Assembly (NCBI GenBank): GCA_900088475.1 | Contig: FLMG01003947.1 | Coordinates: 124,001 to 188,000, forward strand | Reading direction: 5' to 3' | Source: Hyphochytrium catenoides | Lineage: Eukaryota; Protista; Hyphochytriomycota | DNA length: 64,000 nt | In this document: positions 11,380-15,252 of the stretch, in pieces | Layout: each line of letters starts with the position of its first letter | Position numbering within the stretch: the first letter of the stretch is position 1 | Notes under the pieces: model-generated | Database searches by the model: none | Seen by the model: the letters and a program-made list of their open reading frames with translations, nothing else | What the model was told of the DNA's origin: nothing | Position numbers and translations under genes: made by a program

Positions 11380-14300
11380 ATGTCTCCAGCAGCGACGGAG
11401 CTTCCCGTCTATCGTCCCACGCTAGAGGAGTTCTCAGACTTTCTCTCTTACGTCCAGAAAATTGAGCCCGAGTGCGAGAAACTCGGGGCTTGTAAGATAG
11501 TTCCCCCGGCAGGCTGGTGGCATCGAGACTATGAGAACCTGCAGCTTAGCATTCCTTATCCGATCCTGCAGTGCGTGTCAGGGAAGGCAGGAGTTTACAA
11601 CGTTGACCTGGTAGAGAAGAAGGCAATGACTCTAGACGTCTTTAAGGCCTATGCAGAGGATTATGAGAGGAGGGCTGTGAGAGGAGAGAGAGGAGAGAGG
11701 AAGAAGATGGCGTCTTCTGAAGATTTTGACGATGAAGAATATGTTGAGCATCTGGAGCGACAGTTTTGGAAGAGTCTGACAGGAACGATGGAGCCACCGC
11801 TCTATGGGGCCGACATACCGGTAAGTAAGGACAGCGTAGAGGAATTATTTTTGGCCGTAGGGATCCGTGGCCGTGCATTTGGGTAGGGAAGATTGAAGAA
11901 AGCATGGGACAGACGTAATGGGACATAGGGAAAGGGAAGGGAGAAACCTTTCCTGGCGGTTGAAGGCAATAGATATAAATGTTATACTTTCGAGGTGCAA
12001 ACGTGGCGGCATTGGAAAAGTAAACGAGGACTAACGCCTATGTTACGCTGGGACTATATGGAGCTGCCGAAGAGAAGGCTGAGGGCATCGTCTCTTTAGG
12101 AAGTGAGGGAACAGTGAGCTCTAAAGGCAATCTTTCTAACCTTGGAATTTCTTCTTCTCCGCTGCTCTGTCCCTTCGCTCGTGGGTATCTTCCTTCCTTT
12201 GTATAGGACACCCTCTTCCATGACGATCCCGCATCATCCTGGAACTTGGACAGGCTACATTCGGTGCTGAGCGTTCTAGAGAACAGGCTCCCTGGCATCA
12301 ACTCCTCAATGCTGTACTTCGGCATGTGGAGGGCCATGTTCGCGATACACAAGGTGTGAAAAGTGGACAGCAAAAGGCCGAAGAGGACCAATCCTTACAA
12401 TGTCTTGAATTCCTGCGATAACCTCCTGACTGAGTTCCTTTCAATAGGAGGATGTCGATCTCAACTCGATAAACTATTTACACCTAGGAAAGCCGAAGTT
12501 CTGGTACGCAGTTCCTCCTTCCCAAGGTAAAGAATCATCAAGTAGGACTTAGAGCTGAGGGGAGGGTCAAAGCAGACTCCGGTTAGAGAGTTTACGCGGA
12601 GCGCGCTAAGATCTAGCTAACTCATACCATGCTTCTTGCAGGACATAAGGTTGAGATCATGGCCCAGAGTTCGTTTCCTGACAAGTACAATCAGTGCCAC
12701 GAGGTAAGGCCGATCATTACCGTCGCAGTCATCGATCAGTGTAACGCGTTCCTATCCTTCTAATAAAATTATATGCCTTCCTCATCACACCGTCTGCAGT
12801 TTCTGCGCCACAAAGCCTCGATGTTTTCTCCGACACGTCTCAAGGACTCTGGGATTAGCTTTGTGAAGGGTATTCAGCGTCCTGGAGAGTTTGTGATCAC
12901 CTTCCCAGGATCTTATCACTTTGGCTTCAACTTAGGTAACCTATGGGTGGATTGAAAAGGGAGTGATGAGCAATAATATTAGTGTTAGAAGCATCAAAGA
13001 GTAGGCTTGGGTGGCTTGGAATTGGACTGTCTGTGCATAGTGATGGGAAATGGAATCATTAGGCGCGCTGATGTTCCTCCTTTAGCCTCTGACGGTGCCA
13101 TTATATATCTCTTAGGATTTAACATCGCGGAGGCGGTCAATTTTGGCACTGAGAGGTGGATTGCCGTGGGTCTCAAGGCTAAGGTAATGCAAAGCCTACC
13201 ATAGGTCAAAGAGAAAGAGGAGCGGAGTTAATTGATGAGGGAAGATTCAGGAGGAAGATAGAGGAAGGAGATGGTATTCAAGCACAACTGAACGTTAACT
13301 CGGCTTTAGGTGTGCTCTTGTCGGCCGGACAGTGTTCGCATTGATATGGAGCACTTCATGAAGCTGTACAATGGAGAAGTAGAGGAAGAGGATGAGGAGG
13401 ATGAAGGAGAGAGCTCAGAGTGGTCGGAGGCCGATGATCCCTCAGTGGAATGGCGCTTTCGCTGCTGTTGCGGCTTGCGTTGTACCAACAAGAATCCCAC
13501 ACCGGAGTGCTATGAGGTGAGAGGCATAACAGCAGGGCCTTTATTTCTGCCAAAGAAGTGCCAAGAGTCCTTGTGTTAGTTGTGTCTCGCAGTGGTACTA
13601 ATTTTTCGTCTAGTACCCTACTCTTCCACCGTTTTCCTTTGTTTCTCTCTCTCACGCGCGCTTCTCTCTCTCTCTCCCCTGCAATATCTTCTTCCCGGCT
13701 ACGCGGATTGAACCATCGCCCTGTCATGTCTGGAATGCATAGCGATCCTTCGAATGTACAGGTTGCGGGTGTTGGTCTCATATAAAGTGTGAATGGCCGG
13801 CGCTGATGAGAAAGAAGGTACAGCTATTGCATATGAATTCCTTTCTCCCTTTCTTTCGAAATCGTGATCTCCTGGTACGGCCCCTGGTACAGCTCCCACC
13901 GAGAGCCACGCTGTTCACACTCTCTCTCCTCTCCTAATTTATAGGACCATGAACTTCCAGAGGAGCTTCACTGCCGGCACTGCAAGCGAAAGGAGGCACA
14001 GGACAACCGACAGAAATCGGCAGAACCCAGCAAGAAGCGCCCACGATGGAAAATAGGGATGACAGTGGAGGTGGCGGAGGATGATGACCTGGCTGTTTGG
14101 GAGGAGGTAAGTTCTAGACTTTTATTGCTCTTGCTCTACTGTCGGGCTCCTGCACTGCTACTTCACGCCGTTTCTGGCATCATCTGTAGCTATGACTGTG
14201 ATTTTCTGGCCTAAGACCTCTTGACCTTTCTGATGCACGCAGTGTTACTTTCTCTGTCTCCCAGCTACCATGCTGTCCACCCTCGTTCGTCTCATCAAAA

Positions 14301-15252
14301 GATGCCTCTTACACTCGGTCCAGCGCCTCGTTTCTCCTGTCACCTTTCTCTTTGGTTCACGCATCCCTTCGTGACTGAGCTTGCTATCTTACAGGCAGCC
14401 ATTGTAGACATTGCCGATGGTTTCGTTAGAGTACATATAAAGGTTGCACAGATTCCTCCCACGCAGTCACCCCAACACTTCCCTCCCTTGACTTTTGGTT
14501 TCATCTCCGCAGATGTGTGTCTTTGGTCTCATCTAGTTCCCTTCGCCATGTTCCCTGCCTTCTAACGTCAATGGATGCGGTCTCCACAGGGCTTGAAGAA
14601 GGATGATGATGAATGGCTATCTATCGCGTCAGATAGGTTACGAAGAATGCGAAAGAGGAAAGCGAAGGAGAAGACAGGGACAGAGTCCACAGCTCCGCAG
14701 CAGAAAAAGCCCAAGAGCGCGAAGGTGGTCAAGAAGGAGAAGAAATCCCAAACGGCGAGACAAGAGAGAGAAGAGGTAGCTTCGGAGGAAGAAGAAGAAG
14801 AAGAAGACAACAAGGGACACGAACAGGAAGGGGAGGAGGTCCTCATTAGCGGCAAGATTACCCTTGAGGAGTTACCTGAGGACCCTTTAGCCCTCCTTGA
14901 CCTGCCGTTGGAGGCAGAGGATCACTCTGCAGAAAACGACAGGCACCAATTTAGCCGCAAAGCAGTGCGCAAGGAGCGCTGCAAGAAGTGCTCCGGTTGC
15001 CTGACTCCTGATTGTGGAAAGTGCATCTTCTGCTTGGATAAGGTGAAGTTTGGAGGTCCAGGAAAGCGAAAACGCTGCTGCATCATGAGAGTGTGCCAGC
15101 TGATCGAGCCCAAGCCGTCCGGAAGATCCCCCAAGCAGGAGAAGGGAAGAACGAAGGAGGCAGGCCGCAGAGGACGCCAGAGTAGCAAAGGCGATAACCG
15201 CGGCCTCGCCCTTTTGGACGAGATCGCGACCGCGCTCAATGGTACCGCCTAG
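11380..15252 (+). CDS. KDM4: KDM4/JMJD2-type histone lysine demethylase: JmjN-JmjC-PHD-Tudor-like-CXXC
   Basis: JmjN: [28 protein letters not shown]. JmjC: [67 protein letters not shown], with the H-x-E..H iron triad intact. Spliced PHD: [19 protein letters not shown]. Tudor-like: [37 protein letters not shown]: [40 protein letters not shown]. Confidence 0.92.

Follow-up and report, generated by a model that had tools for sequence, protein, structure and literature searches.

A predicted KDM4-type histone demethylase of Hyphochytrium catenoides that combines a PHD finger and a Royal-family barrel with a C-terminal CXXC finger

We analyzed a stretch of 64,000 nucleotides from the stramenopile Hyphochytrium catenoides (assembly GCA_900088475.1, contig FLMG01003947.1, positions 124,001 to 188,000 of the forward strand), referred to below as the window and numbered from its first letter. 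Positions 11380 to 15252 carry what is very probably a single nuclear stramenopile gene encoding a KDM4-type demethylase core followed by a PHD finger, a barrel domain and a CXXC finger. We give a probability of about 0.55 to the fuller reading in which its product is an active histone demethylase recruited through these modules. Since the last exon both completes the barrel and encodes the CXXC finger, the fusion of the CXXC finger to the demethylase in one gene is very probable. A preliminary description of the locus had listed a JmjN domain, an intact JmjC domain, a C4HC3 PHD finger and a barrel each split over three exons, and a KFGG-containing CXXC finger, all joinable in phase; each of these elements was recovered here by Pfam searches, comparison with solved structures, tiling onto orthologues and a phase script.

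An 11-exon gene model

The coding region was assembled from the following segments.

11380-15252, + strand: whole coding region, 11 exons, 695 codons plus stop, 2088 nucleotides in total
11380-11820, 12207-12353, 12448-12526, 12642-12703, 12800-12935 and 13116-13183, + strand: exons 1 to 6
13310-13516, 13743-13817, 13945-14106, 14395-14442 and 14590-15252, + strand: exons 7 to 11

All introns are of the GT-AG type with pyrimidine-rich acceptors, and the exon phases are compatible with one another, based on direct reading of positions 11000-15700 and a script check. The sole in-frame stop of the model is the terminal TAG at 15250-15252, and translation from the ATG at 11380 places the beginning of JmjN at residue 9, the same position as in relatives. 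Domain, structure and alignment searches were run on each exon separately, the joined protein being used only for its length and for the stop count. The nearest full-length relatives, cited like the others by P numbers, were collected by comparing exon 1 with 1.8 billion cluster representatives in phmmer.

A KDM4-type catalytic core

Exons 1 to 6 and the start of exon 7 encode the elements of the catalytic core. The Pfam cutoffs were 26 bits for JmjN, 24 bits for JmjC and 26.5 bits for zf-CXXC.

11404-11505, + strand: JmjN, exon 1 residues 9-42 (PF02375, 57.9 bits; best PDB matches KDM4A and KDM4B)
12207-13183, + strand: JmjC catalytic core, exons 2-6 (Pfam 25.2 bits in exon 3 and 47.8 bits in exon 5)
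12695-13321, + strand: KDM4-type zinc site, formed by the Cys of NQC (last codons of exon 4), the His of FLRHK (first codons of exon 5) and CSC (first codons of exon 7)

In searches against solved structures, exons 1, 2, 3 and 5 were each closest to KDM4A-D or Rph1, and KDM5 and plant JMJ proteins gave weaker scores where they matched. Intron 2 interrupts the HxE motif, such that the His and the Lys close exon 2 and the Glu opens exon 3. Alignments to KDM4D, KDM4C and Rph1 locate the distal His of the iron triad in exon 5 (SYHFGFN), the 2-oxoglutarate (2OG)-binding Lys and Asn in exon 3, and the Tyr in the YGAD motif. The Cys and His of the zinc site are spaced by 6, which is also the spacing in human KDM4A. 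A cluster of this kind, with a Cys and a His in the strand 4/5 insert and two Cys residues past strand 8, is a signature of the KDM4 family (PMC2938197, Table 1). The predicted protein therefore has in common with the KDM4/JMJD2 enzymes (human KDM4A-D and yeast Rph1) JmjN and JmjC domains, the HxE...H triad, the 2OG-related Lys, Asn and Tyr, and the Cys/His/CxC zinc site, and it is closer to KDM4 than to other JmjC families. In every sequence test the core looks like that of an active KDM4-type enzyme, which would most likely remove tri- and dimethyl groups from H3K9 and/or H3K36.

We also considered an active enzyme whose main target is a nonhistone substrate or a different histone site, the reader modules being mere chromatin tethers. 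The substrate is deduced from family membership only, and the identity of exon 1 to human KDM4 is modest, both of which leave room for such an activity. We nonetheless regard it as improbable, given that the active-site and zinc-site residues of KDM4 are all kept and that the core is fused to three chromatin or DNA modules.

A single PHD finger and a single barrel

Downstream of the core, exons 7 to 11 encode two further domains, both interrupted by introns.

13451-13983, + strand: PHD finger, C4HC3 with C-x-C as its first pair, split over exons 7, 8 and 9
14047-14649, + strand: Royal-family (Tudor/MBT/chromo-barrel-like) barrel, split over exons 9, 10 and 11

The 25-residue piece of the PHD finger in exon 8 scored 17.9 bits with the Pfam PHD model, which is under the cutoff. 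When a profile of the orthologous PHD fingers was compared with solved structures, the best matches were 1wee (1.2e-9) and MLL5 (2.6e-7), followed by DIDO1, BPTF and Spp1. The profile of the orthologous barrels matched the MBT repeats of L3MBTL1 (1.5e-5) and, more weakly, the chromo-barrels of MRG15 and MOF (0.03-0.05); Pfam MBT was also weakly present in 6 of the 12 members of the barrel alignment. The barrel had previously been termed "Tudor/Agenet-like." A Royal-family barrel is indeed present, but its profile is nearer to MBT and chromo-barrels than to Agenet, a label that the profile search did not support, and it is not the hybrid double Tudor of animals.

An AlphaFold model was obtained for residues 362-497 of the orthologue P0011, which cover the PHD finger and the barrel, with the exon pieces of the window included in the alignment (predicted local distance difference test [pLDDT] score, 78.6). 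The barrel has four strands in this model. In Foldseek, the model resembled the PHD fingers of Set3, ASH1L and MLL5 and the Tudor domains of PHF20L1 and PHF20, although these similarities were weak, with no match reaching an E value of 0.001, as expected because the domains are so small.

Seven relatives (P0075, P0106, P0011, P0006, P0015, P0020 and P0007) carry, without interruption, the CxC pair of the zinc site, a finger of the form C-x-C...CxxC...HxxC...CxxC and an RVHYKG.....DEW....R motif. The end of exon 7, exons 8 to 10 and the first part of exon 11 tile piecewise onto these contiguous orthologues, which validates the junctions 7/8, 8/9, 9/10 and 10/11. Exon 11 begins with 20 residues (DEW...RLRR) that finish the barrel just as in the contiguous orthologues, supplying its final strands, and a stop-free Lys/Glu-rich linker then leads into the CXXC finger.

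One of these relatives, P0106 (437 amino acids, a cluster representative matched in the exon 1 scan), has a circularly permuted ORF that begins with the latter half of JmjC, the PHD finger and the barrel and continues with a JmjN region and the front half of JmjC. Either tandem duplication or an assembly artifact accounts for this arrangement.

Animal KDM4A-C proteins carry a double PHD (PHD_2/zf-HC5HC2H) and a hybrid double Tudor, whereas the window gene yields no such Pfam hits and instead encodes one Set3/MLL5-like PHD finger, one MBT/chromo-barrel-like domain and a C-terminal CXXC finger. As judged from these profiles, the PHD finger and the barrel of the window are single domains of subtypes other than those of the animal double PHD and double Tudor, and they resemble the animal KDM4 readers by class of function rather than by orthology. 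The earlier statement that animal KDM4 proteins lack CXXC was borne out for the KDM4A-C-type proteins among the animal matches listed, which carry PF13831/PF13832 (PHD_2/zf-HC5HC2H) and have no CXXC, and a 2010 survey of JOR/JmjC fusions gives CxxC only for KDM2 and CBF, not for KDM4 (PMC2938197).

A type-1-like CXXC finger in exon 11

The remainder of exon 11 and the end of the preceding intron contain the following features.

14575-14577, + strand: in-frame ATG in intron 10, 15 nucleotides before the exon 11 acceptor, which would permit a stand-alone open reading frame (ORF) of 225 codons
14650-14958, + strand: Lys/Glu-rich low-complexity linker (direct reading; low pLDDT)
14959-15096, + strand: zf-CXXC, exon 11 residues 124-169 (46 bits; eight Cys, KFGG, full-length linker)
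15070-15075, + strand: Lys-Arg (AAA CGC) at the position of the KQ/RQ dipeptide, the Arg codon CGC being 15073-15075 (direct reading)
15205-15237, + strand: predicted C-terminal helix (exon 11 model, pLDDT about 57-63; not conserved)

The best structure matches of the finger were KMT2B (1.2e-12) and KMT2A (4.4e-12). Like the type-1 ZF-CxxC fingers of KMT2A/KMT2B, CFP1 and DNMT1, it has the eight-Cys pattern, distributed over a CxxCxxCx4-5CGxCxxC cluster and a CxxRxC cluster, together with KFGG and a linker of full length. The window CXXC finger probably still binds DNA.

The closest known targeting logic is that of KDM2A/KDM2B (JHDM1), in which a KFGG-type CXXC finger tethers a JmjC demethylase and a PHD finger lies nearby. 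KDM2 proteins, however, lack JmjN, have HxxT in strand 7 (PMC2938197) and carry F-box/LRR domains, whereas the window protein is of the KDM4 type and its CXXC finger reads KR rather than KQ. Membership in KDM2 was excluded by the JmjN domain, the KDM4-type core and the absence of F-box/LRR Pfam matches in the window gene; in the search with the CXXC finger, KDM2A/B matched through their CXXC domain only.

The helix at the extreme C terminus had been suggested as a cofactor-docking motif. This proposal was dropped, as the helix shows no conservation among relatives, most of which end within ~10 residues past the CXXC finger, and the AlphaFold model of exon 11 had a mean pLDDT of 60.7, too low to use.

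The CpG observed/expected ratio is 0.65 across the window (0.51-0.72 per 4 kb), while that of GpC is ~1.0. This uniform, moderate depletion of CpG agrees with, but does not prove, CpG methylation in this lineage.

Relatives of the core and of the CXXC fusion

The nearest full-length relatives are from stramenopiles, including Phytophthora megakarya, Globisporangium ultimum and Chrysoparadoxa australica. Within the limited searches made, no relative came closer than about 51% identity in exon 1, the top library matches being 35-53% identical. Among the 150 best exon 1 representatives, a CXXC finger was found in one, P0076, a single uninterrupted metagenomic ORF with JmjN, JmjC and zf-CXXC (contig L001). 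A word search with P0076 then returned P0152-P0157, P0159, P0161, P0162 and P0167; each of these has JmjC and zf-CXXC, and the majority also have JmjN. Public collections thus hold at least 11 JmjC and zf-CXXC clusters, P0076 included. P0154 is the hypothetical protein CTAYLR_008651 of the pelagophyte Chrysophaeum taylorii (NCBI, UniRef), and P0157, a cluster of 38 members, sits on a Tara Oceans contig. Since P0153 adjoins PsbP and PPDK genes, it comes from an alga. The source of P0167 is labeled merc, which we take to be a marine transcript catalog. In a pattern scan of JGI metagenomes, a KDM4 core lay directly upstream, on the same strand, at 8 of the 80 nearest CXXC loci. The fusion had been called lineage-specific, a description that is untenable given these loci and the presence of the fusion in at least 11 public clusters other than the window, C. 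taylorii among them.

The stramenopile or algal JmjN, JmjC and zf-CXXC proteins (P0076, P0152-P0157, P0159 and P0161) share with the window gene a KDM4-type core and a C-terminal CXXC finger, but they are shorter (380-500 amino acids), lack the PHD finger and in some cases also lack the barrel. The barrel is present in three of them (P0152, P0153 and P0156), which share with the window the barrel strand IVD.QDGWGR.HVKG...D.W just ahead of the CXXC finger, with a basic linker between the two; in P0152 and P0153 what is left of the barrel is a remnant. Within the limited searches made, the five-module version, with JmjN, JmjC, PHD, barrel and CXXC, was met only in the window.

Two members of the CXXC set have unusual fingers. 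The P0153 ORF ends within its CXXC finger, and the CxxRxC part resumes after a short gap in the same frame (L086, 1837-2200); a small intron probably splits this finger. P0162 (679 amino acids, JGI) has an animal-type KDM4 core with two CXXC fingers, the first of which has a divergent loop without KQ.

In a tree that covers the exon 1 region only and is of low resolution, the window grouped with the fragment P0001 inside a 29-row set (Shimodaira-Hasegawa-like approximate likelihood ratio test support, 88) whose inner branching was unresolved. This set also holds the oomycete P0002 and P0004, the PHD-barrel group and a CXXC group (P0076, P0152, P0153 and P0154). P0162 and P0167 instead fell in a large group with hits named as animal KDM4, implying that CXXC was gained at least twice. 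Union of the window with the stramenopile CXXC group was not rejected by the approximately unbiased test (P = 0.373), nor was it demonstrated. By summed exon scores, the core of the window is nearer to the PHD-barrel proteins without CXXC than to the CXXC group, whose cores rank only ~90th to 150th of 197 in likeness to the window.

Other searches returned little. A word search with exon 11 found only two CXXC ORFs (sponge-metagenome contigs and an unlabeled Logan contig), neither with JmjC nearby, and a region search with the CXXC finger of P0157 yielded 6 candidates only and was uninformative. The ESM Atlas contained no cluster of at least 50 members joining JmjC and CXXC, a metagenome scan with exon 1 recovered no relative, and no viral contig matched in a scan with P0076, giving no sign that intron-free versions are viral. 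Full-text literature searches found no description of KDM4 joined to CXXC, and a 2022 preprint on chromatin evolution mentions none of CXXC, KDM4 and JmjC. The KDM4-CXXC fusion is already in public collections, albeit undescribed.

Weighing the single-gene reading

Several observations weigh against the reading of this locus as one gene for a demethylase with functional reader and CXXC modules. A search for RNA sequencing runs listed none, so the splice junctions of the window gene were read from the genomic letters, and the members of the family are known from their sequences. The relatives closest by catalytic core have the PHD finger and the barrel, yet none has CXXC; these include the PHD-barrel stramenopile proteins (P0006 from Chrysoparadoxa australica, P0015, P0011, P0075, P0020 and P0007), which share with the window the order JmjN, JmjC, CxC, PHD, barrel. 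Since these nearest relatives lack it, the CXXC tail is a recent or patchy addition. In the barrel, the Trp of DEW is invariant, and the Tyr that several relatives have in RVHYKG is an Ile in the window, making a methyl-lysine cage in this domain uncertain. Finally, type-1 ZF-CxxC fingers recognize CpG and reject methyl-CpG by means of a rigid tripeptide whose last two residues are KQ or RQ (PMC3685328). The window tripeptide is R-K-R, such that the CpG-contacting Gln of KMT2A/KMT2B, CFP1 and DNMT1, present in every characterized type-1 domain that binds CpG, is replaced by Arg. Among the nearest distinct metagenomic CXXC domains, this position is Gln in 58 of 62, Arg in 2 and Lys in 2. The proposal that the enzyme senses unmethylated CpG is thus not secured, and the window CXXC finger is unproven as a reader of this mark.

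The substitution raises the possibility, which we hold to be clearly less likely than the main reading but still worth entertaining, that the gene is as modeled and its CXXC finger has lost CpG reading. The finger would then act as a DNA clamp with general or different specificity, or as a protein-protein module like the type-2 CXXC of MBD1. The departure of the window from the KQ/RQ ending fits this possibility, as does the variation within the KDM4-linked group: the position is Gln in P0152, P0154, P0157, P0159, P0162 and P0167 and Lys in P0076, P0153, P0155 and P0161, so that Q, K or R occurs where Q predominates among the nearest CXXC domains, and the constraint looks relaxed. On the other hand, KFGG, the linker length and all eight Cys residues are retained in the window, unlike in type-2 domains; the CXXC loop is still strongly basic; and P0152, P0154, P0157 and P0159 of the group retain KQ. 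CpG or CpG-like recognition may also persist through the Arg, a residue able to hydrogen-bond guanine.

The intron 10 ATG bears on a second explanation, in which the fusion is an artifact because the CXXC ORF (ATG at 14575, 225 codons) is transcribed separately or because demethylase transcripts end before the CXXC finger. That ATG lies in frame 15 nucleotides upstream of the exon 11 acceptor, and both the genomic basis of the junctions and the absence of CXXC from the nearest core relatives are in keeping with separate products. However, the head of exon 11 finishes the barrel as in contiguous orthologues and is continuous with the CXXC finger in one ORF, the order barrel then CXXC recurs in the single ORFs P0152, P0153 and P0156, and a stand-alone product would begin with an orphan half-barrel. 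Taken together, these observations make an artifact highly improbable, marginally more so than the nonhistone substrate considered above. The stand-alone 225-codon ORF could nevertheless misguide ORF-based gene callers.

Proposed function and significance

Under the single-gene reading, we envisage an Fe(II)/2OG-dependent KDM4/JMJD2-family core that is active and would demethylate H3K9 and/or H3K36. The Set3/MLL5-like PHD finger would probably read the histone H3 tail, the single Royal-family barrel could serve as a second targeting module, and the type-1-like CXXC finger, past a flexible charged linker, may anchor the enzyme to accessible linker DNA. Several weak contacts made at once would recruit the enzyme, which could then clear repressive or gene-body methylation near the recognized DNA or histone marks, a recruitment logic that would resemble that of KDM2A/B at CpG islands. 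The analysis shows the gene structure, the domain identities, the intact catalytic and zinc-site residues and the occurrence of the fusion in other algae, whereas we infer the substrate, the ligands of the PHD finger and the barrel, and DNA binding.

To our knowledge, nearly all known CXXC-guided chromatin enzymes, the textbook link between unmethylated CpG and histone marks, come from animals. An H3K9/K36 methylation eraser of the KDM4 type with its own CXXC finger would be a second, independent wiring of DNA sequence or methylation state to histone demethylation, and the fusion is found in algae with poorly known epigenomes. Natural variation among Gln, Lys and Arg at the position that reads CpG also offers a ready series for probing CXXC specificity. 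More speculatively, and we consider this doubtful, the KDM4-CXXC fusions of marine algae and of some lineages of the animal type might constitute a recurrent and as yet undescribed class of H3K9/K36 demethylases tethered to DNA, with a KDM2-like role and with Gln-to-Arg/Lys variants of shifted DNA specificity. If true, such a shift, for example toward another dinucleotide or toward tolerance of methylation, would tie histone demethylation to unusual algal DNA-methylation landscapes. Since domain shuffling is common among protist chromatin proteins and the fusion has gone unremarked in public databases, we view the present result as a useful annotation and a hypothesis rather than as a new principle.

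Flanking sequences

Exons of an NAD-dependent glycerol-3-phosphate dehydrogenase occupy positions 8428-9545 on the - strand (Pfam NAD_Gly3P_dh_N and NAD_Gly3P_dh_C), divergent to the demethylase gene. On the other side, a long ORF at 16893-17711 on the + strand has a weak match to cyclophilin-type peptidyl-prolyl isomerases (24.9 bits) followed by a charged coiled tail. The glycerol-3-phosphate dehydrogenase and cyclophilin-like loci are genes separate from the demethylase. CT/GA microsatellites lie on both flanks, at 10597-10870 and 15600-15900, and yield spurious Ser-Leu repeat ORFs. Further downstream, at ~20400-20430, an assembly gap consists of unknown bases, which appear as X in both ORF translations.

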